A model generated the notes under the pieces. The model was not told the origin of the DNA. It did no database searches and worked only from the letters and a program-made list of their open reading frames with translations. From Paraphysomonas bandaiensis (taxonomy: Eukaryota; Protista; Chrysophyceae), in contig CBFFRP010000153.1 in NCBI GenBank assembly GCA_965644295.1, positions 62,001 to 126,000 on the forward strand: a stretch of 64,000 bases of DNA. Direction: 5' to 3'. This document shows, piece by piece, positions 8,007 through 60,818 of the stretch. Position 1 is the stretch's first letter; every line of letters starts with the position of its first letter. The translations under genes and the position numbers were made by a program.

Positions 8007-8063
8007 CGCATATCATATAACACTGCTACAGAATTGCAACCAGCAGGGTCGTAATGCCTTGAA

Positions 8064-12665: not shown

Positions 12666-12968
12666 AATTTCCTAGTCACATCGAAAATAGTGTAAAAACC
12701 TAGTCAAGGAGATGAAATCTTGTCATTATATAATTGATATTTTCAGTTTACAATGACTAGATTGACTAGCACCTAGCACGACTAGGTGTTTTTAGAATTC
12801 ACCAACTAGCCATCAATTAAATTAATGAATGCAGATATTAAATTTTTATTACTTTTACTAGTTTTTTAAACAAAAGTAGTATGCTAGATGTATTATTATT
12901 TATTCTTGTGTCATTTTGCATAAACTACATCACCGGTCTAACTTTAGCTTTACATCATCCATAATGCT

Positions 12969-16641: not shown

Positions 16642-17446
16642 CAGGGATAGGGAACAATATATTGCAATACTATTGTTAGGTAGCGTTCCATCAATAGTAT
16701 TGATGGATTTTTTAAACCGGCCCTACAATACTATTGCAATATATTGCAATATATTGTACAATATATTGCATCATATTAGTATGACTAATCAGTAAGTAAA
16801 CACATCCGTAGTTTTCATTTTTAGTACTTGCCATATTTTATAAGGTCTAAGGTCACTTGATAATCAAACCCACTACTCTTAACTAATTAAAAGTTTCCTC
16901 ATACTCATCCTCTGAGCCATCATCGGTGACATCATCATGACCATATTCATTCAATATTGATTGAAATATGCTTGCATTCAATATTGATTGAAATATGCTT
17001 GTTCGGGACACCTTCGACCGGACTCCAAAAACAGCGGTAGATGTCCCTACTTTTGTATGCACTCATCATTCAGTTGTCTCTTCTTATCACTATAGGATAT
17101 ATATACTATATTAAGAGAAGTACTGTACATACATGTGGAGAGGTGTAGAGTGCTGTTTGAGCTGGCGATACATAAAAAATAGAAAATAACATCAAAAATA
17201 GGCTTTTTTTCTTATTTTCCGGATATTTGTATACAGAGGCGTATATTTTGCACCATACAGTTAAGGATCTTCTCTTATATGACTATCATAATATTGATTG
17301 CAATATATTGCAATAGTATTGTGAGCTCTATTAACAGAAACACTATTGATGGAATATTTGACCAGTCCACCAATCAATATATTTTACAATATATTGCAAT
17401 ATATTGTACAATATATTGCAATACAATATATTGTTCCCTATCCCTG
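16642..17446 (-). mobile_element. Non-autonomous hAT element (805 bp)
   Basis: TIR cagggatagggaacaatatattg / caatatattgttccctatccctg; perfect 8-bp TSD GTTAATAG (16634-41, 17447-54); repeated CAATATATTG subterminal motifs. Confidence 0.92.
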
Positions 17447-20547: not shown

Positions 20548-22813
20548 GTGTATGCGGCAGCATCCACACACACTGCACATCCGTATAGCATATACACACA
20601 TCCATACAACACAGAAAAACATTCTTGACAACCACAAGAAACATGTGCTGTAGCCCGTTCAGCTGTTTATGTACGGCAGAAGTACTGCTATAGGCGCCTC
20701 TGTTCAGACGCCTCTGGAAAAAACTGTAGGTTTTATGCAAAACCGCGGATCAAGGTCCCAATGAGGTCAGTACAATACGATACAGTGCTGTGTTGTATTA
20801 ACGGCATGTATCCAACTTCATATTAGAGAATAAGCCTCTGTTGAGTACATTGTGTACACATTGGAGACATAGGTGTAACAACACAGTGAAGAGCATTGTG
20901 ATGACAGTGAGAGTGATCTGTGCATTGTGTTGCTAATATTATTATTGGATGGGATGTATATCATGGAACGAATGAAATAATATATCAATTGATAAAATGG
21001 TGCGGAGGTACTAGTTGTGCATTTCAGTATAGAGCAGTCACAGCCCCCTCGACGAATATTGTGGATCGTTTTTTTAAGGTCACAATGAAGTAAGTGCAAT
21101 ATGATATAGTGCTGTGTTATGGTATACATCCAGCTATATGTGAGAGATGTGTGTCAAGTAATCTGCGTAGTGGTTTTCCAGAGGCCTGTGTTAAGTACAT
21201 TGTATAGACATATGAGAGTGCATACAATGCAATGATGTGCATTGTGTTAACGCTTAGAGCGTGTTCAGTAAAGAGCAGTGTGCTGCCTGTGAGGGAATCT
21301 GTATGATGAAGTTGTTCGTTGTTATGTTAACTAACGTTGTTTACTGAAGCAATGATGAAACATTCTTGTCAGATGCTGTTATTACATTCGTGTTTTATTT
21401 TATTTGCAATTGTGTTTACATTTATTGCAACCGGTGGTTTCGAATAGACGTCGTAAATACTTTGTAAAAGCTTAGTGTATACATTATCTTTCACTCTCTG
21501 TTCGTTGCTCCTAGATATATCTTAGACTATATAGCTATATCCACTAATTTAGATATAGCTTTCTAAGTCATATCCTGCTGTAGTTTTTTTTAATCTAATG
21601 TACCAACCTTCTCACTTTCGTTTTCCAAATAAAATCCACATCGTAACCACCACATAGCAGGAAAAATTGAACCCCATGGGTACTCCATGTAGATGAGAGC
21701 TACGTTCCCGTACATGAACACTTAGGGCTTGTACGGCAGAATAATTGTCGCCACCTAATTTAACTTTCCTGTAGGCCAGAAATCCTTTGGAAACGATTTA
21801 ATCTCGGCATCAATACATTCAAATAGTAATTGGACCGAACTGTACTAAAAAGGCGAAGCTTTTAGCTTTTATACATATGGAGGAGTGTACTTGTCCTCGC
21901 ATTGATGCCAATAGACAGGCACTTATTGATGATAAGTAGTTGGATAGTAATTCCATTGATCTCGAGATCCGAGAAGGGAGAGAAGCAGCAATGCCAATCA
22001 CATCAACTGACCCGAAAGAATCGAAGGTATGACAGATTATTGAATAAACATTGATTGAATGAATAGTTATTTCGTTCGTACTATTTTAGTCTGGCTAATA
22101 GATCGTATACGTCTTCCGGTCGTCATGGATCCACTTCTGCTATTTTTACTTCTTAGTTTTGTCATGTTTTTACATTATTTTCCGTATTAGCTTGACAAGC
22201 ATGACCGCGCTTTTTTAAATTGCTTCATCTGATTTCTGCAGTGCAAATGAGACTGTGTGAACGAGTGCTAAAGCCATACATGAAGATATCGAGTGGCGAC
22301 ATGTGTCTGTTACCCCACAGTTTAAGAGATGTGTTTCCATAGATTTTATCTAGAATTAGATAAGTTTGTATGCATATTCATTGACAATGGACGGGTATCC
22401 AAAGCACATCGCTCTGCTCTCCTGAGACGGAGAGAGGTATGAAACCAGCTGTAGAATTGCTACTTGGTACTTGCGGCATACCAAAGATAGAAAATAAAAG
22501 TTTAGTAAAATTGAATGTTTAGTACATATCATTATTTTATGTACTACAGTCGTCAACAACAGTACTCTTCAACTAAATGTCATAGTTTGAATAGCTTAAA
22601 ATAATACTTTTAATTGGTTACAAAGAAGTAAAATTTTACAAGCTATGGAGGAGTTTATAGGGCAGATATGTAATAAATCGGACGTATTCTTTGTGCACTT
22701 GTACTCCTTGAGCATGGTTGATTACAGAGTATCATTACACTGGAAAGTGCATTGTTGAGCACATGAGTCATATCGCAGAAAACTACTGATTACTGATATA
22801 CTGATATCATATC

Positions 22814-23184
22814 TGTATTACTGGATAATCTGGCAATACACATCTATCAGCGTGGATATCAAACCCGGAATTCTCCAGTAAACTTCTCCAGCCTTAAAGT
22901 CAATATATATATATAATAAGAACATATATATATATATCATCCATCATCATTATCATCATTATGTCTCATTATTGATAATCATGTCTTTCTTTGTCTTTTG
23001 AATGGTTATGTAAATATCAATGATAAGCAGGAATTGTCATAGTCATAATATATCATATATCTTAGTGTGAGTTATGGTAATAATAATAATATTCAAACTA
23101 TGTTTGCACAGATAGTATGTACAAACATAAGCATATACAATAGAGAGCTTGTAGAATAGAATAACCTGATAGCTGGTTATTACA
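22814..23184 (-). mobile_element. Solo LTR (371 bp) with 4-bp TSD
   Basis: TGTA...TACA termini; TSD TATC at 22810-13 and 23185-88; homologous to 6158-6535. Strand is given relative to that copy. Confidence 0.85.
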
Positions 23185-25090: not shown

Positions 25091-25191
25091 GAAGTCTGTT
25101 TATTATTAGAAATAGGCGTTTAAGCGTCAGTGCGTAACTCTGATATCGTACTATTTAACGCTATTAAAGCTGCGTGTGCGTCACCGCAAGT
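25091..25191. repeat. Lone truncated arm of the inverted-arm family
   Basis: gtctg..ttattagaaataggcg...taactctgatatc.tactatttaacgcta..aaagctgc.tgtgcgtcaccgcaag matches the arm consensus. Confidence 0.75.
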
Positions 25192-25245
25192 ACGATATAT
25201 ATTTTATATATAAATACACGAGAAAGATCATTTATTCTCAGAATA

Positions 25246-28200
25246 TATTGACTAAAGACCATTTTCAGATGATTAAGATCGTTGTAAGAGAAGTTTAAGT
25301 TAGTCAAACTAGATAGATTACTTTATTATGATTGTATACACAATTGTGTGTGTTGTCATGTAGCACATGTCAACAACATGATAAATTATTTCGTTCATGT
25401 TAACCACTGCTCAACTTCCGTATCTTGAATCGTCATGATATAATACTTCAGTTTCACAGTTATAGCTATATAGCACCTTTTGACTATTGACTACGTATTA
25501 CTGTTTTTCACATTGTATTTAACGTATTCTACAGTACTATCTTAGAGAACCATACGTATTCCAACACTCCTCCTCAATGTAGAAACGAGTAATCGTCATT
25601 ATACTGCAGCTATATATATCATCTAGTCATCTTAGGATAAAACGGATGTGAAAATCTTCATAAAGATACTGTGAACATCACACTTCGCTGTAACACAGTT
25701 ATGTGGGATTCTTACCCACTAAAAACACACCCTTAACCTTTCTTGAACCGCTTCTTCTGATTCTTCTCAACTTCATTTGAAATGCTCCTCTTTTCCCCTG
25801 TGATAGTTTCTTCATGGAGTTTAAAGAGCTTTGTAGATAACGCTTTTGTAAATATGTCGGCCGCCATATCCTTAGTCGATACATGAATCAATCTGGCTGT
25901 AGGAAACCTTCCATTTACGTGTTCCCGAACCCAGTGGTACTTTATCTGAATATGTTTTGATCTTTTGTGATAGACTGGATTTTCTGACAGATCTTTTGCA
26001 CTCTTGCTGTCCATGAAGAATGGGGTTGGCTTCGTCAATGCGAGTCCTAGCTCTCGTAACACCCCCCGTAGCCACACCAGTTCTTGCATGGCCGCATATT
26101 CAGCCATATACTCGGACTCCATACTGGAAGTTGCAACTGTAGTCTGCAGTTTGGACTGCCATGCGATTGCTCCAGCACATAAGAATACAATATAACCGGT
26201 AGTTGAACGTCTCGTTAGTATATCACCTGCCCAGTCCGCATCACTAAATACATGTAAATCAAACTTACTCCCACTGAATTTGATTCCTTTGCTGGTGGTG
26301 CCTCTCAAATATTTCAATAAATGAATAGCTAAACGACACGATGCGTATGTAGGATTACTGCTGTATCTCGATAGTAATCCGATTGCATAGGCGAGATCTG
26401 GTCTTGTGTGGAGTGCGAGATACAGGATTGCTCCAATAATACTACGATACGGAAATTTTGAGACCCAGTCCTCCTGTTCTGATGTAAGTTCCCGTTCTGC
26501 AGCTAGTAGTTCTTGTGCATTTGATGGCAACGGAGCTTCCTTATTCTTTCTACTGTTTCCCATGACATGGTTGAATTTCTGAATCACTTTCTCCGCATAC
26601 TGTGATTGATCTAGTTTGAACCAGTCTTCGCCTCTCGTGATTCGAATATTTAGGAAACTTTGGCACTCTCCCATGTCCCTCATTTCAAACGTTTGGCAGA
26701 ACTTGTTCTTGACAAAAACAAGGAATTCAAAATCCACAGATGCGATTATGATGTCATCTACATACAGGAGTAATAACGTAAGTTTGCCTTGGTGCCAACG
26801 ATAATATAAGCAGGTATCTAACACGCATGATCTAAACTGCATTGACTTTATGAATTTATCGATGTGGCGATTCCACTGACGCGGTGAGGCTCGTAAACCA
26901 TATAGTGCTTTGATGAGTTTAAAACACCATCCATTGCTGAGCTCCTCATCTGGAGGTGGGTACATGTAGACATCTTCATCTAAATTTGCATAACAAAATG
27001 CAGAACTGACATCAAGCTGGTGTACATGCATATGGAACATAAAAGCAATTGCAATCACGAGCCTGATAGTTATCCCTTTGACAACCGGTGCAAATGTAGA
27101 TGGCTCCTCCTCAGTTTTCTCCTGAAGATTTCCTAGTGCGACTAGTCGAGCTTTATACTTCTGTATGTTGCCTAGTATGTCACGCTTGAGTTTGTGAACA
27201 TACTTACATCTGATTAATTTGACCCCAGATGGTCGACGTACTATCTTCAAAACGCCTCTTCGTAAAAGAGCTTTCTTCTCTATTCGTCTGGCTGTTCTCC
27301 ATTCTTCCGCTTGAGGGGACCTCTCCGCCTCTAGAAAACTGTTCGGTTCATGGACGTGTTTATTCTCAGTACTCTCCTCTGAATCCATGACATGTACATC
27401 GGCATCCATTACCTCTATCATGTTAATTTCTCCTAACACTGAAGCATTAGCTAGCCTCCTCCGTAAACGCTTACGTTTCTCTGCATCCCTTTTAGATACT
27501 CTCTGTAGGGTATTAGTACTGTTAGAATTTATAGTATCAGTATATTCAGGTACTCCCTGTTTTACTGCTCGATCAGGTTCTCCCTGAGCTGCATCTGCAT
27601 CAAGTACTCCTTGAGTCATATCTTCATCAGGTGCTCCCTGACTAATACCATGGTTAACTAGCTGCTCCTGATGGCTCTCAGGTGCTGGGATAGTGGACGT
27701 ACTCCGTCCATCAGTGGTACTAGAAGCGTCCCTCGTTCCCGTATATCCCGTGTATCCAGGCGTATTCCTTGTCATTACCTGAACATCTTCTATATGTATG
27801 GGTACCTTCTGCTCAATGTGGGTTCTCCCCGCAGTTACAAGTGACCGATAACCAACAATGACACCCTTTCTTTCTACCACTCTGGTGGTCTTGTACAACA
27901 GCCCGTCTTCATCGTCTATGTGAAAAGTCTTCACGAGATGCTGATAATCATTCACCGTCTTTGGTCTAGGTGCTGTTCGTACTCGAAGAGCGTCGATTTC
28001 TGCGTAATATTCTTCGGTGCGGGAAGGTATACTCTCATCTGTGAGTATGTGTACACACGTAATTACCTTATCGGTTGCTGGGAGATACACCTGGTATCCA
28101 ACTTTATCTTCCGAATATCCCACTAGGTATCCAATCTTTGATTTATCGTCCCAGTCCTTTCGCCTGTCCGCCTTAGGTGTCAATATATAAGTTTTGCACC

Positions 28201-30755
28201 CCCATACTCTAAAATATTTCAAACTGGGTGGCTGACCCGTGACATACTCATATGGGGACATGTATCCTCTGTCCGTCCTTGTAGGGAGTCTGATCAGTGT
28301 ATAGCGAGCAGCATGATACGCGTCTAACCAGAATGGAACCGGTAGGCCTGACTGCAACAACATCGCCAACGCCATCTCTGATGCAGTCCTGAATTTTCGC
28401 TCCTCTACTGCATTCATTTCCGGACTATCTGTTGAAGACCAAGTATGTTTGTAGCAGCCTTGTGATCTCAAATAGCTCCTAAGTTCTTGATTTATGAGTT
28501 CTCCAGCTCCATCAGCGTGGTAGTGGTCCACTCTCAGCTTATATTGCCTAATCTCTCCTTCGAACACCTCTCTAAAAAACTGAATCACTTCTTCTTTAGT
28601 ACGCTGGTTTACGCCTTTTACCCAGAACATCCTACTCGGGTGATGAGTTAGTTTGATCACGTAGCGCTCATCACCTCGAGCGGGAGTATTCAGAAATACT
28701 TGCACATCAGCCGATATGTCCGGCTTGACATCCGTATCCTCCTTTGTGTGAAACGAAACTCTCGTAATCTTTGATCTGGCACATATGCTACAGAGACAAG
28801 ATTTTTTTAATGCAGTCTTCGATAGGTGCTTCCTCTGCAGATTTGAGCCCGTGAACAACATCCTTCTATGTGCCTCCGTTAGAGCCCCTTTGTTGAAATG
28901 GCCCATTCTCCTATGCAGCAGTTCCAGCTCGTCCTCACCAGTCCTATCGCTAAGATTTACTTCACAATTACTCGGTGTAGACACATCTGGAAGCTCCAAC
29001 AGCTGCTGAGTTGGAACTGCAGTCATTCCATTTTTCATGGGTCCCTCCAGTACCAGCTCACCGGTATTACAGTCATAAATTTGGATCCCATACCACACCG
29101 TGAATCGATAGCCCATTTCGTTCAGCTTACGTCCGGAGCACAGGCATCGATTGATCTGATCTGAAATTTCTATGTCTCTCCATGCTCCACGGGAACCCAC
29201 ACTTGTGATATGAATCTCTGATCCCTTCTTAGATCCGTTTATCACCTTTGATGTATTCATATGAGTGTCAAGCATGGTCACATCATTCATCAAGAACATT
29301 GATGATGAACAGCATGTATCTATGTATGTATAGTGTTCAGCAGTACCAATCATACAACATGTGTCACTTTTATCATATATATCAACAGCACAGTCATAAA
29401 GCATATTCGCTTCGGACTCCGAGTCAGACTCGGTTCCTCCTCTGCGGATATTCTCGAATGTGAAAACCTTCCCAGATTTCTGGGGTTTCTTGGTCTTTCC
29501 AGTCGAATTTCGGGGACATTCGTTCGCGCGATGGTTTTTGGATTTGCATACTCTGCATCCTGTATATTCCTTACTGCCCGGTCTTTGTCCCTTCGTTTCC
29601 CCCTTTTTCTTCCTACATTGTTCTGTATTATGATTGTGTATTATACCTTTCTTCGAGCAATAAGTGCACTTCCTCTTTGTAGATACTCTCTCTTTCTTTC
29701 GAGGCTTTTCAATATGATTCAGCTCCTCCGTGCTCTTGCGCTTCTTCTCTATGATTTTCCTCCCATACTTGGTGTCGTCGAACTGTTCGATACGTTTGGA
29801 TAGCAATTCATATGGTACATCATCGGGCATTAAATACAGGGCATAATTCAAACCGTCATATTCATCACTGATAATTCCCTCCTTCAGCCTACTAATTTTT
29901 GATTCTTCCGTTACCGTTTGGTTATGCGCCTGAAGTTCACGAAGAAGCAGCTCAAAACGCAGTACATACTCTTTCGCGGTCTCCCCTGGCTTCATCTCGA
30001 ATGATCCAAACTGAGCAAGCAGAGCACTAATCTTGTTTTGTGTTCCCCCTTCAAAACACGATTTAAGAGTGCTAACCATCTCTCTGGCGCTGAACTTATT
30101 AACTCTTCCTTCAGCTGCCTTGAACTCCTTGTGCTTCAGATGAAACTTCTGCAGCGCCTTCGGAGATCGCTTCACCGCCTCTCTGCAGTATGAGTAGGCA
30201 ATTGCATTCGCCTTCCAATACTTGTCCACCGCTTCTTTGTAGGACTTGGTCTCAAGACTATTCAGGGGTTGAATTCCGAAATCCTCTTCCTCTGGTGGCC
30301 TTTCTAGAGCCACCTCACTCTGCTCCTTTCTCATAAGGAACGTCTCAAAGTCTTCGATCCATTGTTCAACGTTGCTCTCGTCGAACCATGGAACATCAGC
30401 TCTATCCTCCTTCTCTCCTCCGCATTCGCTACCATATTGACTAAAGACCATTTTCAGATGATTAAGATCGTTGTAAGAGAAGTTTAAGTTAGTCAAACTA
30501 GATAGATTACTTTATTATGATTGTATACACAATTGTGTGTGTTGTCATGTAGCACATGTCAACAACATGATAAATTATTTCGTTCATGTTAACCACTGCT
30601 CAACTTCCGTATCTTGAATCGTCATGATATAATACTTCAGTTTCACAGTTATAGCTATATAGCACCTTTTGACTATTGACTACGTATTACTGTTTTTCAC
30701 ATTGTATTTAACGTATTCTACAGTACTATCTTAGAGAACCATACGTATTCCAACA
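25246..30755 (-). mobile_element. Full-length Ty1/Copia LTR retrotransposon
   Basis: 321-bp LTRs 25246-25566 and 30435-30755, identical by eye. TSD GAATA. PBS TGGTAGCGAATGCGG (probably tRNA-iMet) abutting the 5' LTR; PPT TGAGGAGGAG. Confidence 0.97.
25733..30451 (-). CDS. Copia Gag-PR-IN-RT-RH polyprotein (single intact ORF)
   Basis: Two Zn knuckles; protease-like YIDTCCS; integrase HRRMGH..CSIC, HADGAGE, NAVEER; RT YKARLVA, QLDVSSAF, LYVDD; RNase H SDADWAGD, KHIQIKYH. First in-frame ATG at 30451. Confidence 0.95.
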   Translation of the reverse strand: MVFSQYGSECGGEKEDRADVPWFDESNVEQWIEDFETFLMRKEQSEVALERPPEEEDFGIQPLNSLETKSYKEAVDKYWKANAIAYSYCREAVKRSPKALQKFHLKHKEFKAAEGRVNKFSAREMVSTLKSCFEGGTQNKISALLAQFGSFEMKPGETAKEYVLRFELLLRELQAHNQTVTEESKISRLKEGIISDEYDGLNYALYLMPDDVPYELLSKRIEQFDDTKYGRKIIEKKRKSTEELNHIEKPRKKERVSTKRKCTYCSKKGIIHNHNTEQCRKKKGETKGQRPGSKEYTGCRVCKSKNHRANECPRNSTGKTKKPQKSGKVFTFENIRRGGTESDSESEANMLYDCAVDIYDKSDTCCMIGTAEHYTYIDTCCSSSMFLMNDVTMLDTHMNTSKVINGSKKGSEIHITSVGSRGAWRDIEISDQINRCLCSGRKLNEMGYRFTVWYGIQIYDCNTGELVLEGPMKNGMTAVPTQQLLELPDVSTPSNCEVNLSDRTGEDELELLHRRMGHFNKGALTEAHRRMLFTGSNLQRKHLSKTALKKSCLCSICARSKITRVSFHTKEDTDVKPDISADVQVFLNTPARGDERYVIKLTHHPSRMFWVKGVNQRTKEEVIQFFREVFEGEIRQYKLRVDHYHADGAGELINQELRSYLRSQGCYKHTWSSTDSPEMNAVEERKFRTASEMALAMLLQSGLPVPFWLDAYHAARYTLIRLPTRTDRGYMSPYEYVTGQPPSLKYFRVWGCKTYILTPKADRRKDWDDKSKIGYLVGYSEDKVGYQVYLPATDKVITCVHILTDESIPSRTEEYYAEIDALRVRTAPRPKTVNDYQHLVKTFHIDDEDGLLYKTTRVVERKGVIVGYRSLVTAGRTHIEQKVPIHIEDVQVMTRNTPGYTGYTGTRDASSTTDGRSTSTIPAPESHQEQLVNHGISQGAPDEDMTQGVLDADAAQGEPDRAVKQGVPEYTDTINSNSTNTLQRVSKRDAEKRKRLRRRLANASVLGEINMIEVMDADVHVMDSEESTENKHVHEPNSFLEAERSPQAEEWRTARRIEKKALLRRGVLKIVRRPSGVKLIRCKYVHKLKRDILGNIQKYKARLVALGNLQEKTEEEPSTFAPVVKGITIRLVIAIAFMFHMHVHQLDVSSAFCYANLDEDVYMYPPPDEELSNGWCFKLIKALYGLRASPRQWNRHIDKFIKSMQFRSCVLDTCLYYRWHQGKLTLLLLYVDDIIIASVDFEFLVFVKNKFCQTFEMRDMGECQSFLNIRITRGEDWFKLDQSQYAEKVIQKFNHVMGNSRKNKEAPLPSNAQELLAAERELTSEQEDWVSKFPYRSIIGAILYLALHTRPDLAYAIGLLSRYSSNPTYASCRLAIHLLKYLRGTTSKGIKFSGSKFDLHVFSDADWAGDILTRRSTTGYIVFLCAGAIAWQSKLQTTVATSSMESEYMAEYAAMQELVWLRGVLRELGLALTKPTPFFMDSKSAKDLSENPVYHKRSKHIQIKYHWVREHVNGRFPTARLIHVSTKDMAADIFTKALSTKLFKLHEETITGEKRSISNEVEKNQKKRFKKG

Positions 30756-36740: not shown

Positions 36741-37563
36741 GAAAGTCTGATGATTAATTGCTGGCTCTATACTAGTCTATAGTAGAATACTATTCATACC
36801 ACAGTTTTTGTGCACGAGATGATAGAAATGATATTAAGCTACATCTACAAAAATTCGTTCTATCTGTGCTGCGGTTGGTAGCGAGTTAGTTCACCCTACA
36901 CCTGCCAGCGCCCCGGAACGACTTGTGCATCGTGGGGTGCACCATGGTGCAACCGTTCCGGCTAATGCGTTTAGTCAGGGAGCCTACCTTTGAATAACAC
37001 CACTGTTGTGATGGAGATCGAAAATATGCGCGGCGGAGTCGTGATGCGAGGTGAAATGTTGTGGTATGTGAGGGAGGAGATAAGTTTGGGAATTTTAGGA
37101 GCGTTTGTTGCTGGTGGTTCTTCGTGGTAGGTGTTGCCTTGCGCGAAGATATCTGAGGGTTGAGGATATACTTGGAGGAGGGTGAGTATTGACGGGTTGA
37201 TGGCGGTGGACGTGGGGTCGTGGCGGCTTAGTTCGGTGGAGTCCGTTGTCATCTGCATGCTGGGAAACTAACGTGAGCCGAATATTATACATAGTCAGCA
37301 GTCAGCAGATAAATTGTTCTGCCCACACATGGACAAATGCTTGTGTGGTACAAGGGACATCAATTAGTGTCACTTGTGTAGGGACGTCTTTGGGCCTTGA
37401 CGAATAAACAGGCATCCGGGAATGGGCCCACCTCAAGGGCATCTGGGGTATTGGGCTGCCTACTAGAGCCAAGCATTCGGGCCAGTTCACATTAAGGACA
37501 GAGAGCAAAAAGTGGTCGCACCTTGGTGCTTGCGGCGACGCACAAGCAGCTTTGGTAGCGTCA
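36741..37563 (-). mobile_element. Composite inverted-arm element, copy 2 (long arm 37563->37260, C-rich insert, divergent short arm 36741-36963)
   Basis: The long arm aligns to 42095-42410 in reverse. The short arm has gaaagtctgatgatta and cttgtgcatcg..atggtgcaaccg. Confidence 0.8.
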
Positions 37564-37936
37564 ATTACCACCACACTACACTACTATCTTTAATGATGCG
37601 TGAATGTCCTGTGTCGGAATCAATAATTATTCACGAATGATGTGTTGAATATCAAGTACATAATAATCACAACCACCTCTCAATGAAGTTTTGTTAATTT
37701 TAGCTAACAACGATACAAATAAAACTGCATACACGACACAGCAGTGAAGTGCAGTGGCATAGAAAAGCAACTCCTTCAGGTGACCACTAATAAGCGTTTA
37801 CTACACCACCTCATCGTCCTTCGTTCAGACAATGATTTAATGATTCAACAGCGACCAATAAACAAGAACGAGAAAATTAGAAAAAACTACCATACATACA
37901 GCTGGCAATCATATCAGCTTTTCAAAAACACAATTC

Positions 37937-40600: not shown

Positions 40601-41801
40601 GTGATTGTTGTTTTGCTGTTGCAGTAGGTAAATGCAATTTATTTTGCTCTTGCAGTTGATGGATATTGGTATTATAGATTTGAATGGCGATAGCGCAAAC
40701 GGTAAAAAATGCCGAAATTAGTCTGTTCGTAAAATCGTAATATTCTAGATATCATAGTAAACGGAAGAAGATAATACGCCTTGACGAATATTATTTTCCG
40801 GCCAGTGCGTTTTACGGCCAAAATATTAGTAATAGCGGGGTAGTTTAAGATATTTTTTGCCGAAAAGCTCTCAGTATTCGAGGGGTCAATCCTATTAATT
40901 TCTGATGATATTATGCGTGCTGATCCTATTAGATCGTCAACTTTACTTAGAGGTATATGGCAGATTACTTGTGTACAATTTACAAGCAAACGGAAGCGAT
41001 GGATACCTAAGACCCCATTACCATGTTAGAAGCTATACTTGAAGAAGTGGGACTGTACCTCAGAGATGGGTGTGTGTGGTGGAGCTGGGGTCCGTGATGA
41101 GAGATGGCTTGGGGAGAGTGGGCCATCACAGTTAATAGTTTTTGTCGCTGCTCTGTTTTACTCCTTGTTGGGTAACCGCAGATGTGGTGTCCGTTGGGTG
41201 AAGGGGTTTTTTATAGTGGGTGAGGGAGACGTTGCCCGACTCTGTTCTTGAATCCGTCTGCGGTGTTGAGTTCTGCGATATGATGTGATATATATTGTGC
41301 AATTGAAGTAAGTTAATTGTATGCAATAGGTGAAGTCAACTGATAGGTGTAACGGGTGATTATAGTTACAAAGGAATTAAATTCAGTTACAGATGTGTGA
41401 CTATACAAGATATAGAACTGACTGATGAACATATGATAAACAGATGTTGCTGAGAACAGATGTTTCATCAGATGTTACACAAATATGTAGTGAAGTGTTC
41501 AAAATAATAATTATAATTTCTTACTTGAAATTGCATTGTGTTCAACATAAGTCGAGGTAATACCAAAACCTGGTAAAGCGATTTCACCAGGTTTCATATC
41601 TAAGTATTGAGTTATTATTTTACTGTAATTTGTATCTGAGAGGTTAAAGATAAAGAAAAAGTTGCAATTATAGTTGTTATTAGCAATATTTATTATGATA
41701 ACAAGGTTAAGGTTTACGTTAACTTCAGTGAAATGTCCAATTCTAACATGCGGTTCTTAAACAAGTGAGGGTTACCTTTAAGGGAGGGAGAACCTATACA
41801 A

Positions 41802-41964
41802 GAATGTCTGATTATTACATACGGTCGTGTACAGAAACTAGTTTGATATCTATAGACTAACTAATAACTGGACTTGCTATATACTATATACCACTAGTGG
41901 CGGGCAACCGTCTCGGGACTGCTTGTGCATCGCTGCGAGCAAAATGGTGCAACCGTCCCTACTG
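41802..41964. repeat. Lone divergent short arm of the inverted-arm family, in tandem with copy 3
   Basis: gaatgtctgattatta ... gggactgcttgtgcatcgctgcgagcaaaatggtgcaaccgtccc. Confidence 0.7.
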
Positions 41965-41970
41965 TATATT

Positions 41971-43484
41971 GAAAGTCTTATTATTAGCAATATGCTTTAA
42001 AAACCTGCACCAACTTAGTAGCTAGATGAATGCTAGACAAACTAGTTAGACCTTTACCCATAACTAATCAGCACAAATTCTATTATTCTACTATTTAACG
42101 CTACGGAAGCTGTTTGTGCGTCGCCGCAAGCACCAAGGTGCGACCACTCCCGCTCTGAGTTCTTAAGGTGAACATACCGGATGCTTGACTTCAGCAGGCA
42201 GCCCAATACCCCGGTTACCCTTCAGGTGGGCCTGTCCCAGTTGCCCTTGAGGTGGGCTCATTCCCGGATGCCTGTTTATTCGTCAGGGCCCAAAGACGTC
42301 TACACAAGTGACACTTATATTTTGGTGTCCCTTGTATCACACAAGCATTCGGCTATGAGTGGGCAAAAGAATATCTGCTGACTATGTTTGCGGCTCGCGT
42401 TAGTTTCCCAGAGAGAATCTCTCCGGTACTTATCCGCCAGAACACACGAAAAGGTGCGAATCCGACTTTGTTGAGGGTAACCGTCCCTTGTAGTGAGGTT
42501 AATCGGGGGGTCTACCTTTTTGGGCAACGTGTCTGACATGCTTCTCACCTGCACTCACCCTGACATCATTCACATACGTAAAGATGTCTACCAAGCACAC
42601 CACAGTAAGCTTGACAAACTTCGCACACGCACGCTCCCCCATCCCTGGTTACACACCGCCATATAACAAAACTAGCTAAAGCCGCATGGAATCCAAACAC
42701 CCCTCAGGTTTAACGCTACTGGGCCGGCCACATTACTGCCACACAATTGGCCGACGCATTCGGACGCCAGATATCCAACGCACTTCTCGAACATCCGTTC
42801 CACGCCCTCGAAAAATCCATCACCTCTATCCTGCTCCCCCTATATAATGGGGGGCTCCGCATGCTTCGAAATAGGGGACTCAGACACCACAAAGCAGACA
42901 CAACATCAGTAACACCGGTCACGACACTGACACTCACAGAACGCCAGTCTCAGGTTAATCACACGACACCAAAAATTCTCCAGATACTCAAGGCGACATC
43001 CACCCCTCGAATTCTATCCTCTACAAGAGTCCGAACCCGACAGAGGCAAGCAAAACCACTCCGGAAACAACTCCTCCATTTTGGCCGAAACCCCACCTCG
43101 ACAACCAGCACCATCTCCACCATAGACTTACACTCTCCTCTACATTTCGCCCCATCCACTCCTCACATAACCCATGGTGTGCACAGTCTGTGCATGCGGA
43201 AGCCGTTGTGTGATCATGCCGGGTTTTCCCTTTGGCTCGGTTTCTTCCCATTGCGTAGGATTTGTCCCATACGTATGCCGTCTCGCTCATTTTGTCGAAA
43301 TATTATGTTAAGGACAGAGAGCGAAAAGTGGTCGCACCTTGTTGGTCCTTGCGGTGACGCACAAGCAGCTTTCGTAAAGTAAAAGACTAGGTATCAGAGT
43401 TAAGCACATGTGAGTTAAATTGTTTTGCTACACTAGTTCTGACTCTTACACGCCTACTGCTAACTGCTAATAATCAGACATTCA
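41971..43484 (+). mobile_element. Composite inverted-arm element, copy 3 (long arm 41971-~42426, ORF-tail insert ~42427-43307, inverted short arm 43308-43484)
   Basis: Arms are inverted copies of the family core. The insert encodes LLTCTHPDIIHIR and YWAGHITATQLADAFGRQISNAL, the latter homologous to the copy 4 insert. Confidence 0.85.
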
Positions 43485-43795
43485 TTAAGGGTTTGACATA
43501 TTGCACACTATTAACTCACTTCAGTTGCACAACACGATTAGTCATACAGTAGAGCTAATAAACAGCGGAATAGAAGATGAAATGCGGAATTTTTTACTGT
43601 TTTTCGTCGTCGCTCTTGTCAGTGTAATGAACATTTGCGACAGCAGACGCATATAATTTTCAGTCATTTTAATGAACGCGTATGTTATCTATATTATATA
43701 GTTTTCAGATAAAAGTAATTTAAATTCTACGTGACGTCAATGCTCAGTTATAAATCAATTACTAATGTTATTTACAAAGGACCTGTTCTTTCATT

Positions 43796-49065: not shown

Positions 49066-50212
49066 GTAGTGACTGTCTGATATTAGCAATTGGCGTGCAA
49101 GAGTCAGAACTAATGTAGCAAAACAATTTAACTAAAACTACTAGTGCTTAACTCTGATATCCTACTATTTAACGCTATGAAAGCTGCTTTGCTCTGCTAA
49201 CTTCAGGATTTTGTGTCTTTAAGGTAAGCAGCCCGGATGGTTGACTATATACCCCGGATGCCCTTGAGGTGGGCCCATTCCCGGATGCCAATTTATTTGT
49301 CAGGTCCCGAAGACGTCTACACAAGTGACACTTATTAACGCCCCTTGTTGTCACAGAAGCATTTGTTGGCTATAATGAGTGGGCAGAACAATATCTGCTG
49401 GCTATATATATTATGCGGCTCACGTTTGTTTCCCGGAGAAATATCCGGACGGGGACTATTACTGAGGCCCAACTGGAAAATGTGTTTGGGGCGCAATACA
49501 ACTGTGCTTTAAACTCGCGAGGACTTCGTACTCTAGAAATAGCAGTTGTCAACAATCTTCACGCTGAAGCCAAAACACTGTTTCAAGACCGTAGTCGTCG
49601 CTACGCTTCCACACCCAACGGACCGCATATAGACTCTCCCCCCCAGAACATGTCAGAAATGCAGCAACACACGATTGAAACGTAGAAACACACGTCGTAA
49701 ACCGCTGGTTCTTCGCTAACTACAGGTGTAACGAAGAGACCTAGGTCATCCCACACGTCTATACCTCTTTCACAATCTGCACAAGTGGAAACGCCAAGGT
49801 GCAGCCTTCGCCATATCCAGACACGATGGCGTCCCCAATCCACCCCCTCGTCCATGTTTCTCAGGCTAGGTACACTCGACACTCAACTCACTAATTTCGA
49901 GTCCTGTGTCTCCACAAAGTTCTACAGCAAGAGACGCCCCCCTGACTGACCACATCTGCACTTTTAGGACTCACGTCCATAGGGACCTTCTCCATCACAT
50001 ACAAGAACAGAAGTGGTCACACCTTGGTGCTTTCGGCGACGCACAAGCAGCTTTCGTAGCGTTATATTATAGTACGGTATGAGAATTTGTACTAGTTATA
50101 GTAAGTTAGTAACAGGTAGAAGTCTATCTAGCTTGATTAGTTTTCATCTAGCTACTTATCTGGTGCTGATTCACGACGCCTATTTCTAATAACAAGACGT
50201 TCATATATGTAG
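49066..50212 (+). mobile_element. Composite inverted-arm element, copy 4 (long arm 49066-~49448, ORF-tail insert, inverted short arm ~50006-50212)
   Basis: Same architecture as copy 3. The insert encodes TGTITEAQLENVFGAQYNCAL. Confidence 0.85.
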
Positions 50213-53509: not shown

Positions 53510-54321
53510 TTGTCAGTAAATATTGCGAATTTGTATATATTCACGTTCACAAAATATATAAGTTATCGTTCGATAAGTATGTAATATAAATAGAGTTGAC
53601 ACAAGCAGAACAGTTGCTGTGCTTTTAATTTAATTGCATATTTTGGCTTCACATACAGTATATAATATATGTAATCGAAGCGACTACGTGAAACGTTGAT
53701 ACAGTGACACAGCAAAATGGATGATTTATGAAACTATTATGGTACAAGGATGAAGTAGTGCAAGTCAGGGACTGGTAACCATTAATGGTAGTGGCATTAA
53801 TGGCCATTATAATTGCCGGGACTTTTTTAATTAATGCTATTATAATTGCCGGTAACCGGACTACCATTGATGACATGTGTCACGCATACCTGTAGTTACT
53901 GTTATACGTGGAGTTATACGGTGTTATACTGCGGTACTCTAGGTAGCATGCTGTTGTACTTTCATTTTCAGTTTATTTAGTATACATTGCGGTTACTGTA
54001 TTCTTGAAGGGATATAAGTCCCGTATATGTACAAGTATGATACTGTAAACTGTAGATGATTCACAGCAAGATAGAGTGTTGTATGATTTCACTTTCTTTC
54101 TTTACACGTTTTAACGTAATTTAATTCATTCTATACTCGCGGTTTGCTTGTGTTAGGAGGCAGTTTCACCGGTTTGGTGTTCTGGACAGTGTATTCTCGG
54201 TTTGGGAAGCACTTTAAATTAATAAAACGTTGTAAACACGGTCTTTCTCATCAGAAAGATTACAGTATTAATACTTTAGTCGGATAGAAAGAAACATTGT
54301 TTATTTATATTATTGTCGACT

Positions 54322-54960
54322 ATGAGTTCGGAAGAAGAGGTTTCAAAGATTATGGAGTTCCTTCAGCAGCGGTTTGCTGAACAAAATGAACAGTTTGCTC
54401 AACAAAAGCAGCGGTTTGCTGAACAACAAGAGCAGCTGAACAAGCGTTTTGAGTCCATCGATCTTCATTTCGAAATGTTCGAACAAAGATTGCAGCAGTT
54501 GGAGTCTCGACGTTCCTCAAGACGAGCGATTCCAGCTAATTCAGATCTACTTCAGAACAGAACCGATGAGAACTGTATTGTGCAGAATGTTGTCAATGAT
54601 ATGTTGGAATTTGTTGAGCAGCAGGACGTTCAGTCAGAGTCATTCGAGGCTGAGATTTTTGTTGATAATTCTCAAGTTGTTATGCAGCATGTTGCCATTG
54701 ATCCTGAAATGGTAATTCCAAATTCCTTTGGAAAAGAGACTACTGCCAATGATGCTACAGATGTAATCGAGCGCATGTCAGTCGTACCTTTTTCAGTGTT
54801 CAATTATTCGGTGTTTGAATATTCCTTGTTTATGCTGATAAAGCAAGATGCAGCTTGTTACGTTTTTCAGTTTCTTACGTTGAACAAGAGTTTGAGTTTA
54901 TTGCTTTCAAATCTTGTGTTTATTGCGGAGCATGGGCCAGGGCCGCCATTAATTCAGTAA
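54322..54960 (+). CDS. Coiled-coil ORF in the Gag position of the Gypsy element
   Basis: ATG 57 bp after the 5' LTR; heptad repeats QRFAEQNEQFAQQKQRFAEQQEQL; no recognised capsid motif. Confidence 0.55.
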   Translation: MSSEEEVSKIMEFLQQRFAEQNEQFAQQKQRFAEQQEQLNKRFESIDLHFEMFEQRLQQLESRRSSRRAIPANSDLLQNRTDENCIVQNVVNDMLEFVEQQDVQSESFEAEIFVDNSQVVMQHVAIDPEMVIPNSFGKETTANDATDVIERMSVVPFSVFNYSVFEYSLFMLIKQDAACYVFQFLTLNKSLSLLLSNLVFIAEHGPGPPLIQ

Positions 54961-57139
54961 GTTCAATTCCAAATCCAGCAAGTGTCTTTTGTTTCAAAGT
55001 TCATCTTATTATTTATGATGATGCAATATTTATCATGGTTTTATTCATTTTATTTCGGAATGGATTGAGGTTGTTGTGAGCCTTACCGTTGTGATAGGAG
55101 TTACAATATGAGAGTTCTGAGTTTTTGAGAAGTGTGATCCATATTCAATAATGTCTAGTTAAAATTATGCTCAATAGTCCTGTGTGATACTGACTACTAC
55201 GAGAGAATAATTCGGTTTTAAGTTCAATGTATAAGAATGGGTTTCAGTGAATTTATCAAGTTTCAATGAATGACAGTATTGTCTGAGATTGGTAAAAAGT
55301 CTGCAAAGAGTTGTTCAATATCAATGGTATGGTTTCAACATCAATGGCAAGCAATTATTGTTATAGTTTTGCAAGGGTCATGTATGGTTTGGATAAGTTT
55401 TGCAATACTATATGATTCATATACGAAAGTATAATTTCAGAGGAAGTAAACAGTTTTTTAATGAACGCGATTGCCTCTATGTGAACAGAATGTAAATTTT
55501 GATGTTGTAATTTCAGTATGAGGAAAGTATATTTGGAGCAATATGTTTTCAGTGTGCTTTGCATTTTGTATTAAAGAGAATGAATGGACACAGGAAGGAG
55601 TTTGAGATATTCATTGTCTTGTTGATGGTTATAAAATGGTTACTCAGTTTTTTTTTTTGGATCTGCAATGGGATTGAATTTGAATATATGGTATCCATAA
55701 ATGCAACGAATTAACTTGTCTAAATTCATGGTTAGTTGTTGAATGAAAGTTGTTCGAAATTGAAGTTTCTGTTACGTTGAAGTGAATATGGTTCAGTGAT
55801 ACAACATGTCAATGAAATTTTGAAAACTTTGTCGCTGGTATTTTTCAATTGTTCGACTGTATTATGCATCGGGTATGAGATCGATGGTTAAGTGTCAATG
55901 ATATTTGGAGGTATGGTGTTGATAATACTATTGCATGCGAAAGAATTATATATGCTAGTGATGGTTAACTTCGAGACTAAAAATGGGAGTTATTACTTTG
56001 CGAGCTTGTTGTTATTTCAGTTGATATTTCTATTGTTGGATTCTTTTCAATGAGATTGCGTTGAGTGGATCATTCTATTGTTTACAATATTATAATGTTG
56101 TATCTGAGGGAAATCGTTACGTATGGTTACTGAAATATAAGACCAGTGCACTATGTTCGTATATATTCAGAATGAGATGAATGATGTTTTGATTGGGGTG
56201 GTTATTGATTGGTCCGGTGATATTTTCATTAATCAAATATTGTTTCGTTCTAAAATCGAGAGGATGAATTACAATTATTGTACAAAATAAGATATGTCAA
56301 AGTAGAGTTTGGTGCACAAATACATGGATGATGGTGGTTGATTACTTTCAGATTCAGTTGTCAAAATGGGTTGTAAGACACTTACGGTTTCCAGTTGTGT
56401 GTGTCTCTTCTTGCAAAAGGGTGGTACGAGAGATTTGAGTTAATATTATGGATTCAAATTCGGAATAGTGGATTAATTAAGTTTCTTTGTGAACTCGCTT
56501 CTATTGTTTATGATGAATGAAATAAGAGTTTTACAACGTTGTTGTAGTATGTCTGGGTACAACAAGGTTTAAGCTAAGACTTGCTCAACTTGGCTGTTGC
56601 GAGTATTTGGTGGAGTGTTATTCAGTCCTAAGGTTAGTGTCTCTCTGATTCACTTCGGACTTGTATTCACGGAAATTCAATTGTGTCTAATGGCGGGTGA
56701 AATGAACAAGTGTTTGAGTTGAAGCGTATTTCCTACAATTGAATTGCGTGAAGTTTATGATGATCAAATACTTGTGGTTAATGTCATTGAGTGCGGAATC
56801 TATTTACATGACCATTAGTGGCTCTACGTAATTCTCATTTGGTTATATTGGATATATAAGGCAAAGGTTAATCCAAAATCTTATGAGCATTTGAGAATTC
56901 AGTATCTTTTAATTTCACTGTGGTATTCTATTTAACTACAAGTGAATTCTGTAGTTGATGCGAGGATGCAATTTGTCATGTTAAGTTTTTCCCGACTGGA
57001 ACTACAGAGATTGATGTTAAGGCGTTATCCGAGGGCTTATCTTGCTATTGTGTGGATGGGATTAGTTTTTGAATCTACTGCTATTATTGGTCTTCGTGAG
57101 TGCTGGGTTCTATGAGGAGTTTCTATTGAAGTGGTTTGA

Positions 57140-58292
57140 AGTTCGATTTCGAGTGTCATTAACTAATCGTCATGAGTCTAATATGGTCGAGCGATCTCAT
57201 CGAGAGCTGTTGTGATTTCTACAGGGTTTAGTCCACGATGAGAGGTTGCAAGATTCATGGGGGGACATTGAGTGTTACATGTTGATTCAGTTCATTTTGA
57301 ATGATGAAGTCAGTAGTGAGACTGGACTCTCTCCTTTTCAATATGTGTTTGGTACCGTTGATATTCCATATTTTCGTTTGGGTGAACTGACTATGGATGA
57401 ATCTTCTGCTGCGGGTTATGTGTCTATTTTGAATGAGAACTTACAGAAGATTCGAGCGGTTGCCATGGATGTTCAGCGCAAGATCCAAGACAAGCGCAAG
57501 TCTGCCACGCCTGCACATACTTTGAACGAATATCAGCCTGGTGATTTAGTTTTGTTGCGGCTGGATCCAACTCAGCACAAGCCCAATAAATTATACCCTC
57601 GTTTCAAAGGTCCTTACGAAGTGGTATCCACGTATAAGGCTGATGTCACATGCATGCATGTTGTGATGCGTTTTGAAGTTGTGTAGCACATGTCATGGCT
57701 CAAACCGTTCTTTGGTACGCCTGAGCAGGCATATCGTGTTGCGCAAATTGATTTTAACCAGTATACTGTGGTTGCTGTGATTGCATACCGAGGAGATCCG
57801 GAGGTTCGTTCTCGAATGGAATTCCAAGTTCAGTTTGAGGATGGTTCGTTATTATGGCTTCCATGGTCACAGGATATTGCTTCCACCTCGCAATTTCAGT
57901 CGTTCTGTGAGCAGAAACCTCAATTGTTCCCTCTGTTGTTTTCTGCTGCTATGGCAAAATCTGAACGTGCACGTTTGAAACGTATACCTATCGAAGGGGT
58001 GTCACCTGGTCAAACAATTTATGTAGATTTGCGTGCATGGGGTTCAGATTTCTATGATGAACTTAATCTGCCGAATTGTTATACAACGATGTATGTTGTC
58101 GAATGTTCTTATGTGCGGTGGGTTGGCCGTCGCCAGTTACGTATAGACCTCTATTGCCCTTTGTTTCAATCTACATATGAATGGAGTGCCTATGACGTTC
58201 ACTGCTATGGTCGAGTCACGGAATTTGATCCTTCTACTAAGGTATTGGTGGATGCTGCATTCTGCCAACAATATCCTACTATTCTTCTCTAA
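57140..58292 (+). pseudogene. Gypsy integrase C-terminal half + chromodomain, with stops
   Basis: HESNMVERSHRELL*, TGLSPFQYVFG, YQPGDLVLL..KLYPRFKGPYEV (GPY/F), stop at 57684-86, then chromodomain YTVVAVIAYRGDP..MEFQVQFEDGSLLWLPW. Confidence 0.85.
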
Positions 58293-58953
58293 TTGTTGAT
58301 TACTTTTATTTATTTAATATTTATTTCATGATTATATCACATATATATATTATAACATTCATACTATTATTCATACTTATTATTATATAATATTGCTCTA
58401 CGTATGTTTATTACTTTTATTTCATGAATTGGATATTTATTTGCTAATGCTTGGAATGACGCTATATTGGCTGATACAAGTGTTACTTCTATCTATCCCA
58501 GATATGTATTCCTATTTCTTTTCTCTAGCTGGAGGGAGAAGGGGTAGTGTCACGCATACCTGTAGTTACTGTTATACGTGGAGTTATACGGTGTTATACT
58601 GCGGTACTCTAGGTAGCATGCTGTTGTACTTTCATTTTCAGTTTATTTAGTATACATTGCGGTTACTGTATTCTTGAAGGGATATAAGTCCCGTATATGT
58701 ACAAGTATGATACTGTAAACTGTAGATGATTCACAGCAAGATAGAGTGTTGTATGATTTCACTTTCTTTCTTTACACGTTTTAACGTAATTTAATTCATT
58801 CTATACTCGCGGTTTGCTTGTGTTAGGAGGCAGTTTCACCGGTTTGGTGTTCTGGACAGTGTATTCTCGGTTTGGGAAGCACTTTAAATTAATAAAACGT
58901 TGTAAACACGGTCTTTCTCATCAGAAAGATTACACATGTACTGCTATATATTG

Positions 58954-60540
58954 CAGGGCTAGGAAACGATATATTGAATTGCAATACATTGTACAATATA
59001 TTGATTGGCCGACCGGCCAAAAATCCCATCAATATTGTTTCTGTTCAAGTGGCTCACAATATATTGCAATCAATATTACGATACGAGATGTGGGAACTCG
59101 CTGTAGAGAAGAGAAAGGGTAAAAATCATGAAAAAAATCGTGAAAAAGTGTCTTTTATGTTTAATTCCATAACTTTTTCATTTCAGCAATCGAGGTAGCC
59201 AGACGTAATAATGCACAACACATATGCCACTCTGGGACTTCAAAAAGGCCTTTGACTCCATTACACCTACTCTAATGAGACTAGCATGGGCACGGCTCGG
59301 AGTTCCCGATGCTGTGGTTGAATGGTTTGGTGACTTAGACGCTGGGGGCCTCACATTCCCATGGACACCGTTCATGGCGAATAACATCGAGCCACGTTCG
59401 CTGGCAGACCATTTAGCTACCGACGGACACTTCCTTGCACAATTCGTACTGGGAGTTGAGGCCGCGAGAGGTATCACACAGGGGGGCACCGAATCCACAT
59501 CCTTCTTACATGGCTAGACCTAGATCTTAGAGCAATCTGTCTTACACCAGCACCGCTACTCCTACCGACCCCGAACTCAGGGAAAAAAGTCTCCTTCGCG
59601 GATGACATCACCACCATAGATACGTCTATCACTCAGGCCCAGGAAGAGACAACTGAACGATGAATGCATACAAAAGTAGAGATATCTACCGCTGTTTTTG
59701 GAGTCCGGTTGAAGGGGAACCAAACAAGCACGAATGCAAAGTCTGTGGGCGCATACGAGTGCAGAAGATATCGAATGGCTACAAAAACTTGAAGAACCAC
59801 ACATCGCCACATGTATTATGGTGAGTGGGAAGATTCCATGAAGAAGTATTTACGGGTGTTGTTTGCACCAATGGTACCATGGATGCTGTTGTTTTCCAAC
59901 CTTCGGACAAAGCAAAAGCATTTTTGAGTGGGTAGAGTTGTTAATGCTGATAATGTTTGCATTATTGTTGAGTTCTGCATTGGGGACAACTGCGCTACAA
60001 ACAGAAAGCTGGCAAACGATTCCGGTAATACCTTTGTTTGAGTGAAATCGTCGTCTGTTATAACTTTTCAATAGTATATAGGTGTGCCCCTAGTTGGATG
60101 TGCATCTCATCGACTTAACCTTGCGGTCAATGAACTCCTCGGTAGCAAAGAGAAGCGAAATAAGGAAGGAGTTGTGACAAGACCTGACCAAGGCATTAGA
60201 CCTCTCATTCAGCACGTAGACCTACTCATGGGGAACTGTAAGCAGCCTAATAATTAATTTTGGATGAATATGGTGATGTTGACGTCAGCGATGATGGCTC
60301 AGAGGATGAGAACGAGGTGGATTTTTATTAGCTATAAGTAGTTGTGGGTTTGGTTGCCATATGATCTTAATGACTAATACTAAAAATGGAATCTACAGAT
60401 GTGTTTACTTACTGATTAGTCATACTAATATATTGCAATATATTGTAATTGTATTGTTGAGCCTGTTCAAAATCTCCATCAATAGTACTGTTGGAACGCT
60501 ATCTAACAATAATATTGCAATATATTGTTTCCTAGCCCTG
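58954..60540 (+). mobile_element. hAT element with transposase remnant and nested LINE RT fragment
   Basis: TIRs cagggctaggaaac / gtttcctagccctg; subterminal regions homologous to 16642-17446. Transposase pieces VEFCIGDNCATNRKLA and GVPLVGCASHRLNLAV at ~59960-60240. TSD not matched. Confidence 0.85.
59185..59815 (+). pseudogene. Non-LTR (LINE-type) reverse transcriptase fragment
   Basis: WDFKKAFDS, AWARLGVP, RGITQG, then frameshifted VSFADDIT: LINE RT motifs 3-5. Confidence 0.8.
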
Positions 60541-60818
60541 AGATCAATACTAAATAATTGAAATAATTGAAATTGAGACAGCAAGTAATAATTGCAATTA
60601 TAATTGACTACAACCTTCGTCACTTAATTGACACGCAGCCCTGCTATTCCTATACAAGTAACAACCCTCACATGCACATGTGATCATGCTTAAGATATTA
60701 TTACTTCGAAATAACGACAGTGCAGGTACTATATATATATTATTTTGCTATACAATATATTGCACAGAAATTCAGTATAAAATGTTGGCAAATATATATA
60801 AATTATCATTGCTTGCCC

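Follow-up and report, generated by a model that had tools for sequence, protein, structure and literature searches.

The stretch of DNA considered here (the window) consists of 64,000 nt from the chrysophyte Paraphysomonas bandaiensis, corresponding to positions 62001-126000 of contig C153 in a eukaryotic assembly of 62.5 Mb and 669 contigs. Four places within it, referred to below as copies 1 to 4, show a long arm and an inverted shorter arm separated by an insert of variable length, and in the original prediction, made from the window alone, they were regarded as insertions of a single unrecognised retroelement-like family. We concentrate on copy 3, located at 41971-43484, the long arm of which is a discrete, free-standing, non-coding retroposon resembling a short interspersed nuclear element (SINE). 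It lies within a truncated and internally rearranged long interspersed nuclear element (LINE) of a lineage that we call LINE1. The components of copy 3, from left to right, are as follows.

41796-41960, minus strand: the last ~165 nt of the LINE1 3' untranslated region (UTR), with a type-a 3' module and the LINE 3' end at ~41802; 87% identical to LINE1 3' ends and continuing into segment C when the SINE is removed.
41951-41960: left copy of the 10-bp target-site duplication (TSD) of the SINE, AACCGTCCCT on the plus strand; these 10 letters fit both sides of a 528-nt skip.
41961-42478, minus strand: SINE-like retroposon, full-length at ~508 nt plus a tail extension of ~10 nt, recognised by its genomic copies, sharp ends and TSDs.
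42479-42488: right copy of the TSD, matching the left copy.
42479-42535, minus strand: LINE1 segment C, the end of the open reading frame (ORF) and the start of the 3' UTR; 89-95% identical to LINE1 copies.
42536-43177, plus strand: LINE1 segment B, ~642 bp of the ORF tail, inverted in place; opposite to segments A and C as judged from at least 30 genomic copies, where the ORF is continuous.
43178-43186: filler of 9 nt, adjoining segment A.
43187-43286, minus strand: LINE1 segment A, with the C-x2-C half of a knuckle motif, the LINE being 5'-truncated at ~43286; 90% identical to LINE1.
43310-43488, plus strand: 5'-truncated type-c 3' module consisting of core and tail (the short arm), assigned by module comparison.

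The core unit of the SINE-like element occupies 41971-42478 on the minus strand, with its 5' end at 42478 and its 3' end at 41971 or, including the tail extension, at 41961. When copy 3 was compared with the genome, query positions 1-507 matched many places on their own at 93-94% identity, and a search with the core unit (3242 first-look candidates) yielded at least 40 genomic copies which extend from position 1 or 2 to position 508 with 92-94% identity. Five copies that were read start with CCCTCAACAAAGTCGGA and finish with ...TAATAATAAGACTTTCAATAT, and the exact tail motif CTAATAATMAGACWTTC is present 703 times in the genome and absent from a reversed control. Four of the five insertion sites checked carry TSDs of 10-12 bp that differ in sequence (AGGGACGGTT, ACTATCGCTT, ACCACACAAGC and GAGC.ACAAAAC), and at the fifth (locus L025) the flanks match over at most 4-5 nt. 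For copy 3, a SINE-free form was found on contigs of three other runs, which join position 41950 directly to 42479, skipping 528 nt and retaining the 10 letters common to both sides. The original prediction had found no TSDs and had placed the end of the long arm close to ...gttagtttccc; in copy 3 the arm is enclosed by a 10-bp TSD and continues for a further 68 nt to its true 5' end. One of its two proposals for the origin of the arm, a partner RNA of fixed length sharing the 3' end of a LINE, fits these genomic copies with TSDs of their own.

The 508-nt element contains no ORF exceeding 66 amino acids, and the overall fold predicted for its RNA is no better than that of shuffled sequence (z = -1.35). 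Its transcript would begin at CCCTCAACAAAG. We also considered a sequence-specific target site, ACAAGGGAC, which was dropped when the TSDs of the five SINE copies and of about ten LINE copies gave no consensus. "Mini" SINEs with an internal deletion occur as well, in which a 5' head of 21 or ~120 nt is joined straight to the 3' module (L019:591-854 and window 12011-12179), together with head-to-tail arrays of SINE pieces at G000:C69:5048-7139 (period 681 nt), at C19:215287-215388 (tails 85 nt apart) and at L019:38-746.

The insert of copy 3 (query positions 555-1207) matches at least 30 genomic places with 86-88% identity and corresponds there to the middle of an ORF (locus L031, 6532-7314). 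This ORF encodes a complete CCHC (Cys-Cys-His-Cys) knuckle, C-x2-C-x8-H-x4-C, followed by the stretches LLTCTHP..IR and YWTGHITATQLADAF. The suggestion that LLTCTHP..IR marks the end of such a knuckle was therefore correct, the insert holding the second half of a motif that is complete in intact copies. The homology noted between the protein tails of copies 3 and 4 is likewise real, both being LINE C-termini, and the short arm is indeed the 3' end of 5'-truncated elements lacking long terminal repeats (LTRs).

Copies of LINE1 are 99% identical over kilobases, their 5' truncation points are scattered, and their TSDs measure 9-14 bp in at least seven loci, with a single TSD of 32 bp. One full-length LINE1 of about 9.4 kb was read on contig C426, from position 3857 of locus L047 to position ~7228 of locus L034. 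Its 5' end consists of ~160-nt tandem monomers, a finding that contradicts the other proposal for the long arm, namely that it represents the inverted 5' terminus of a LINE with terminal inverted repeats (TIRs), and no inverted terminus was found within its TSD. The original prediction had recommended classification by the reverse transcriptase (RT) and endonuclease, and Pfam profiles assigned to the single long open frame a SET domain, an apurinic/apyrimidinic (APE)-type endonuclease (Exo_endo_phos, E 3e-9) and an RT (RVT_1, E 2e-19). With no LTRs, variable 5' truncation and variable TSDs, LINE1 is an APE-type non-LTR retrotransposon. Its relatives in the PDB (R2 and L1 ORF2p) are all distant, and the closest named database protein, described as "jockey-like", shows 29% identity. 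More than 150 RT matches were found throughout the genome, and at least three LINE lineages are present: LINE1, combining SET, APE, RT and CCHC, and those referred to as a2 and LINE2.

The SET domain (L047:7404-7718; Pfam E 3e-9, with an ELLVNYG..YW motif) lies directly upstream of the APE domain (7917-8663) and in the same frame on contig C426. The stretch comprising both domains occurs in three identical copies, two short near-identical fragments and five diverged copies (70-84%), and it therefore belongs to the LINE1 lineage. A literature search revealed no LINE with a SET domain, and we know of none that has been described.

Two further observations concern the LINE1 family. Directly after the full-length element, and within the same TSD, lies a piece of ~900 nt (L034:7230-8131) in which ~120-nt tandem monomers precede the terminal 189 nt of the LINE1 3' UTR; the piece represents a 3' transduction or else a non-autonomous element with a LINE tail. 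In addition, a protein of 780 amino acids (P0001) matches the LINE1 RT-region query with 100% identity across the half that aligns, and its NCBI entry is a metagenome-assembled genome (MAG) of a marine "Nitrospiraceae bacterium"; this is probably eukaryotic DNA that was binned into a bacterial MAG.

What connects the SINE with the LINEs is their 3' module. Fourteen modules taken from LINE1, a2, LINE2 and the SINE subfamilies were aligned, and they share a conserved core, a variable AT-rich spacer, which defines the types a, a2, b and c, and a conserved terminal motif, TAATAATMAGACWTTC, followed by 4-10 variable nt. The consensus folds into a branched stem-loop core, with an outer stem around small hairpins, and four pairs of the outer stem maintain pairing through changes on both sides, each of them in 2-5 of 11 sequences. 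Positions 323-508 of the SINE are 73% identical to the LINE2 3' UTR over 199 nt, and the type-b spacer is common to both; the SINE core and tail are also common to LINE1. At least two tail types are found on one and the same GC-rich SINE body: type b, and type c in copies 1 and 4. The module is a candidate recognition site for the RT.

The LINE in copy 3 extends on the minus strand from ~43286 down to ~41802 and carries the SINE, in the same orientation, within its 3' UTR. Its middle part, segment B, codes for H-x4-C, the second half of the knuckle, and for the YWAGHITATQLADAF stretch, and the knuckle is divided by an inversion breakpoint; ~26 nt and ~12 nt were lost at the two breakpoints of this segment. 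Beyond a 23-nt filler, the truncated LINE faces the type-c module head-to-head. This module and the left arm of copy 3 belong to different subfamilies, with only ~74-78% identity. No genomic match spans the copy 3 junction, and no clear TSD surrounds 41802-43484. The C/B junction fits twin priming, yet B is followed by segment A in direct orientation. Lone short arms had been listed at 25091 and 41802; the first is indeed a lone module, and the second proved to be the 3' end of the copy 3 LINE itself.

The remaining three copies and the lone module were resolved as follows.

11920-12668: copy 1, delimited by arm comparison and a search of the genome with its flank.
25091-25193, minus strand: lone module, 5'-truncated within the core hairpin, assigned by module comparison.
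36741-37250, minus strand: left part of copy 2, a 5'-truncated LINE of the related subfamily type a2 (the final ~290 nt of the ORF plus the 3' UTR), assigned by sequence match.
37251-37567, plus strand: right part of copy 2, SINE positions 68-387 with no recognisable tail, assigned by sequence match.
49066-49450, minus strand: left part of copy 4, a type-c-tailed SINE that has lost the hairpin core and begins, through 5' truncation, at ~position 50, assigned by sequence match.
49451-50208, plus strand: right part of copy 4, a 5'-truncated LINE2 with the ORF tail RTGTITEAQLENVF... and a type-b module, the type found on the 508-nt SINE, assigned by sequence match.

The single layout claimed for the four places holds to the extent that tail, hairpin core and GC-rich block are common constituents; it breaks down in copy 2, where the long arm lacks the tail, in copy 4, where it lacks the core, and in copy 1, where the inverted repeat extends for ~90 nt into unique flanking DNA. 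Copy 1 comprises, from left to right, ~90 nt of the unique flank in inverted form, a minus-strand mini element (12011-12179) in which a 21-nt SINE head is joined to a type-c module, a spacer of ~70 nt, a plus-strand SINE from ~position 85 to its tail (~12255-12583) and the unique flank. Its arms share 97-98% identity over their outer ~200 nt and ~80% over the inner ~80 nt, and the ~90-nt flank was found in the genome at these two places only. The identity of the arms thus includes unique flank, and copy 1 is therefore a product of local inverted duplication or repair and does not consist of paired transposon termini. At the junctions of copies 2 and 4, the SINE matches end and the LINE matches begin, and neither junction has a second occurrence in the genome, contrary to the idea that the composites propagate as units. 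The arms within one copy carry different tail types, and no convincing TSD was found around any composite, the candidates being 5-7 nt long and offset from the ends.

Elsewhere in the genome, several inverted modules next to LINEs can be traced to nesting. On contig C426 an inverted module directly precedes the full-length LINE, and it is the 3' part of an older SINE in antisense orientation; the remainder of this SINE follows the LINE and the second LINE-tailed piece, and the whole insert lies within an 11-bp TSD, ACAGCCCGGAT. What could pass for an inverted module belonging to the LINE 5' end is thus an older SINE split by insertion. At locus L008, LINE1 lies antisense inside a SINE at ~SINE position 68, with the TSD AGTTTCCCA, and this is the region in which the long arm had earlier been seen to stop. 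Further antisense nestings with TSDs occur at L007 and L033. Because a host SINE carries its module 3'-terminally, a LINE that enters the SINE body in antisense orientation always produces outward-facing modules around a LINE ORF tail. The orientations of adjacent modules were counted in three sets.

Sampled loci outside the window: outward 7, inward 6, tandem 15.
First 100 exact tails, pairs less than 3 kb apart: outward 1, inward 0, tandem 10.
Window: outward 4, inward 0, tandem 1.

Outside the window, head-to-head pairs are no commoner than tail-to-tail pairs. Of the 11 close tail pairs, 10 are tandem, a predominance which suggests that new copies insert preferentially where a tail is already present.

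Taken together, the arms are best explained as patchworks of the ~508-nt SINE-like element and of truncated partner LINEs that share its 3' end, the products of an ordinary SINE/LINE partnership, to which we assign a probability of about 0.8. The partnership is of the "stringent" type. Since every component can be classed as a LINE or SINE insertion of the standard kind, the claim that no standard architecture fits fails. The RT of the LINE would recognise the 3' module and copy any module-bearing RNA into nicked DNA by target-primed reverse transcription, and this process would leave elements truncated at the 5' end, flanked by 9-14-bp TSDs and joined on their 5' side through microhomology or filler. 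One of the LINEs would drive the SINE. The arm-like units would then be independent events piled into the same neutral DNA. In copy 3, the long arm results from insertion of the SINE into the LINE 3' UTR. Copies 2 and 4, as well as copy 3 on its right side, each hold a direct head-to-head junction, and these three junctions probably arose by adjacent insertion with loss of the intervening DNA, and local rearrangements would account for the in-place inversion in copy 3 and for the inverted duplication, including unique flank, in copy 1.

Several observations weigh against this interpretation. Neither a tRNA, 5S or 7SL head nor an RNA polymerase III (Pol III) promoter was recognised in the 508-nt element (Rfam to E 10; ARAGORN), and for that reason the SINE label is one of architecture; the head may be of a new kind or may be served by another polymerase. 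Copies 2 and 4 each consist of two 5'-truncated elements in direct contact, and a SINE head was looked for beyond the LINE tail and not found. Simple nesting, in which such a head is expected, was accordingly rejected for these two copies. SINE positions 50-85 contain three of the four points at which the SINEs are broken. Moreover, four of the five adjacent module pairs in the window face outward, above chance expectation, and the sample with which they are compared is small and consists of loci chosen by their LINE1 or SINE matches. The orientation count in the window is unusual, but it was chosen after the fact, and nesting explains part of it.

The alternative that survives best is double target-primed reverse transcription, or "two-template twin priming", as had been proposed from the window alone. 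Both 3' ends of a staggered break would prime on separate module-bearing RNAs, one from the SINE and one from a LINE, and the two cDNAs would join by microhomology, giving a head-to-head chimera with its tails facing outward, the arrangement seen in copies 2 and 4 and, on the right side, in copy 3. The direct abutment of 5'-truncated elements is as this scheme predicts, and so are the missing SINE head beyond the LINE tail, a possible 4-5-nt microhomology in copy 4 (when read against LINE1), the short filler in copy 3 and the excess of outward over inward pairs in the window (4 against 0). The left junction of the copy 3 inversion also has twin-priming geometry, a hint that template switching may occur in this family. 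Against double priming, no composite is flanked by a convincing TSD, the SINE of copy 2 lacks the recognisable tail that the scheme requires, outward and inward pairs are about equally frequent outside the window (7 and 6) with only one of 11 close exact-tail pairs facing outward, and other head-to-head cases resolve as nested insertions with TSDs. It is not needed for the copy 3 long arm and gains no support from the other copies. Adjacent insertion with loss of the intervening DNA is the more likely origin of the head-to-head junctions, and we consider it unlikely that double priming, which is not known to have been described before, is a regular by-product of an RT that needs the 3' module in order to start.

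Much less probable is an assembly artefact, in which composites and inversion would be mis-joined repeat copies. Short-read contigs do break across repeats, and their depth in this region is thousands-fold. Nevertheless, a contig of run X3 covers 43148-43261 with 0 differences and crosses the B/A inversion junction, although it extends for only ~30 nt on one side, and an assembly error is therefore probably not involved. Furthermore, the unique flanks are 100% identical in three runs, and the SINE TSD and the continuity of the LINE across the SINE are mutually consistent. Least credible, and already largely refuted, is a single mobile element with TIRs and an internal ORF tail, whether a new retroelement or a TIR transposon or miniature inverted-repeat transposable element: inverted arms surround a variable insert four times in 64 kb and those of copy 1 are 97-98% identical, but the arms of one copy belong to different subfamilies, the junctions found in copies 2 and 4 occur only once in the genome, the long arm is mobile by itself and has its own TSD, the identity in copy 1 continues into unique flank, the TSD of the full-length LINE encloses no inverted terminus and the coding partner has APE and RT domains and not a transposase.

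The patchwork reading has counterparts in other organisms. Stringent LINE/SINE pairs with a common 3' tail reportedly include UnaL2 and UnaSINE1 of the eel and tRNA-derived SINEs that depend on CR1 or L2, in work associated with the names of Ohshima, Kajikawa and Okada. As in those pairs, a short non-coding retroposon is homologous over its 3' ~190 nt to the 3' UTR of a partner LINE, a conserved 3' stem-loop and a short, terminal repeat-like tail take the place of poly(A), and TSDs are variable, 5' truncation occurs and subfamilies carry swapped LINE-derived tails on one body. Differences are that no tRNA, 5S or 7SL head was detected here, that the unit is long (508 nt), that the partner LINE has a SET domain before its APE endonuclease and that the dependence on a LINE is deduced here from sequence. 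Conserved bodies with exchangeable LINE-derived tails are characteristic of CORE-SINEs, V-SINEs and Deu-SINEs, and the single GC-rich body with tail types b and c resembles them in layout.

Twin priming in L1 was reportedly described by Ostertag and Kazazian in 2001. The C/B junction of copy 3 is similar in that the end of a 3' segment meets, across a gap of ~12 nt, the 5'-most end of an inverted upstream segment; it differs in that the direct segment A follows the inverted segment B, giving a net in-place inversion with two breakpoints. To our knowledge, head-to-head chimeras formed from two different RNAs have not been described for L1.

Penelope-like elements, whose inverted pLTRs the original prediction named as the closest precedent, and DIRS elements, with their inverted terminal repeats, bear only a superficial likeness to the copies in the window, in that an RT-related ORF lies between inverted terminal sequences. 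Pfam searches of the LINE ORF yielded neither the GIY-YIG domain of the former nor the tyrosine recombinase domain of the latter, and Rfam, applied with gathering scores to the entire window and with E up to 10 to 41750-43550, yielded nothing credible (no hammerhead ribozyme, such as pLTRs often carry, no hepatitis delta virus-like ribozyme, and no tRNA, 5S or 7SL). An affinity to either group is not supported: the endonuclease encoded together with RVT_1 is APE-type, a CCHC knuckle lies at the ORF end, the insertions have TSDs, which DIRS elements lack, each arm is an element in its own right and ribozymes were absent from the Rfam results.

A puzzling repeat architecture is thus resolved into known biology, a LINE and a SINE that probably uses its machinery, stacked in the neutral DNA of a compact genome. 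For annotation, the results define the ends of a ~508-nt retroposon present in high copy number, distinguish at least three LINE lineages and their tail types, and supply a conserved 3' stem-loop. Of possible interest to specialists are a SINE without a recognisable Pol III-type head and an active LINE with a SET (histone-methyltransferase-like) domain directly before the endonuclease.

The window as a whole is rich in transposons, including LTR elements with identical LTRs and many inverted and direct repeat families, and parts of it are present in marine and seawater metagenome runs. Two LTR retrotransposons, at 25245-30733 and 53877-58846, have direct terminal repeats that are 100% identical over at least 300 nt, with pair spacings of 5189 nt and 4670 nt, respectively; they are very recent insertions. 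Distant inverted pairs with 81-92% identity (6191-6558 and 22791-23153; 16635-17446 and 58954-60547) represent families that have no relationship to the SINE/LINE module. Positions 7911-8500 are taken up by a long tandem array of 8-nt period (77 overlapping register copies). Directly to the left of the LINE 3' end in copy 3, at 41181-41750, lies another high-copy repeat with a contig depth that is thousands-fold, and a frequent variant of it lacks ~170 nt (41547 joined to 41718).

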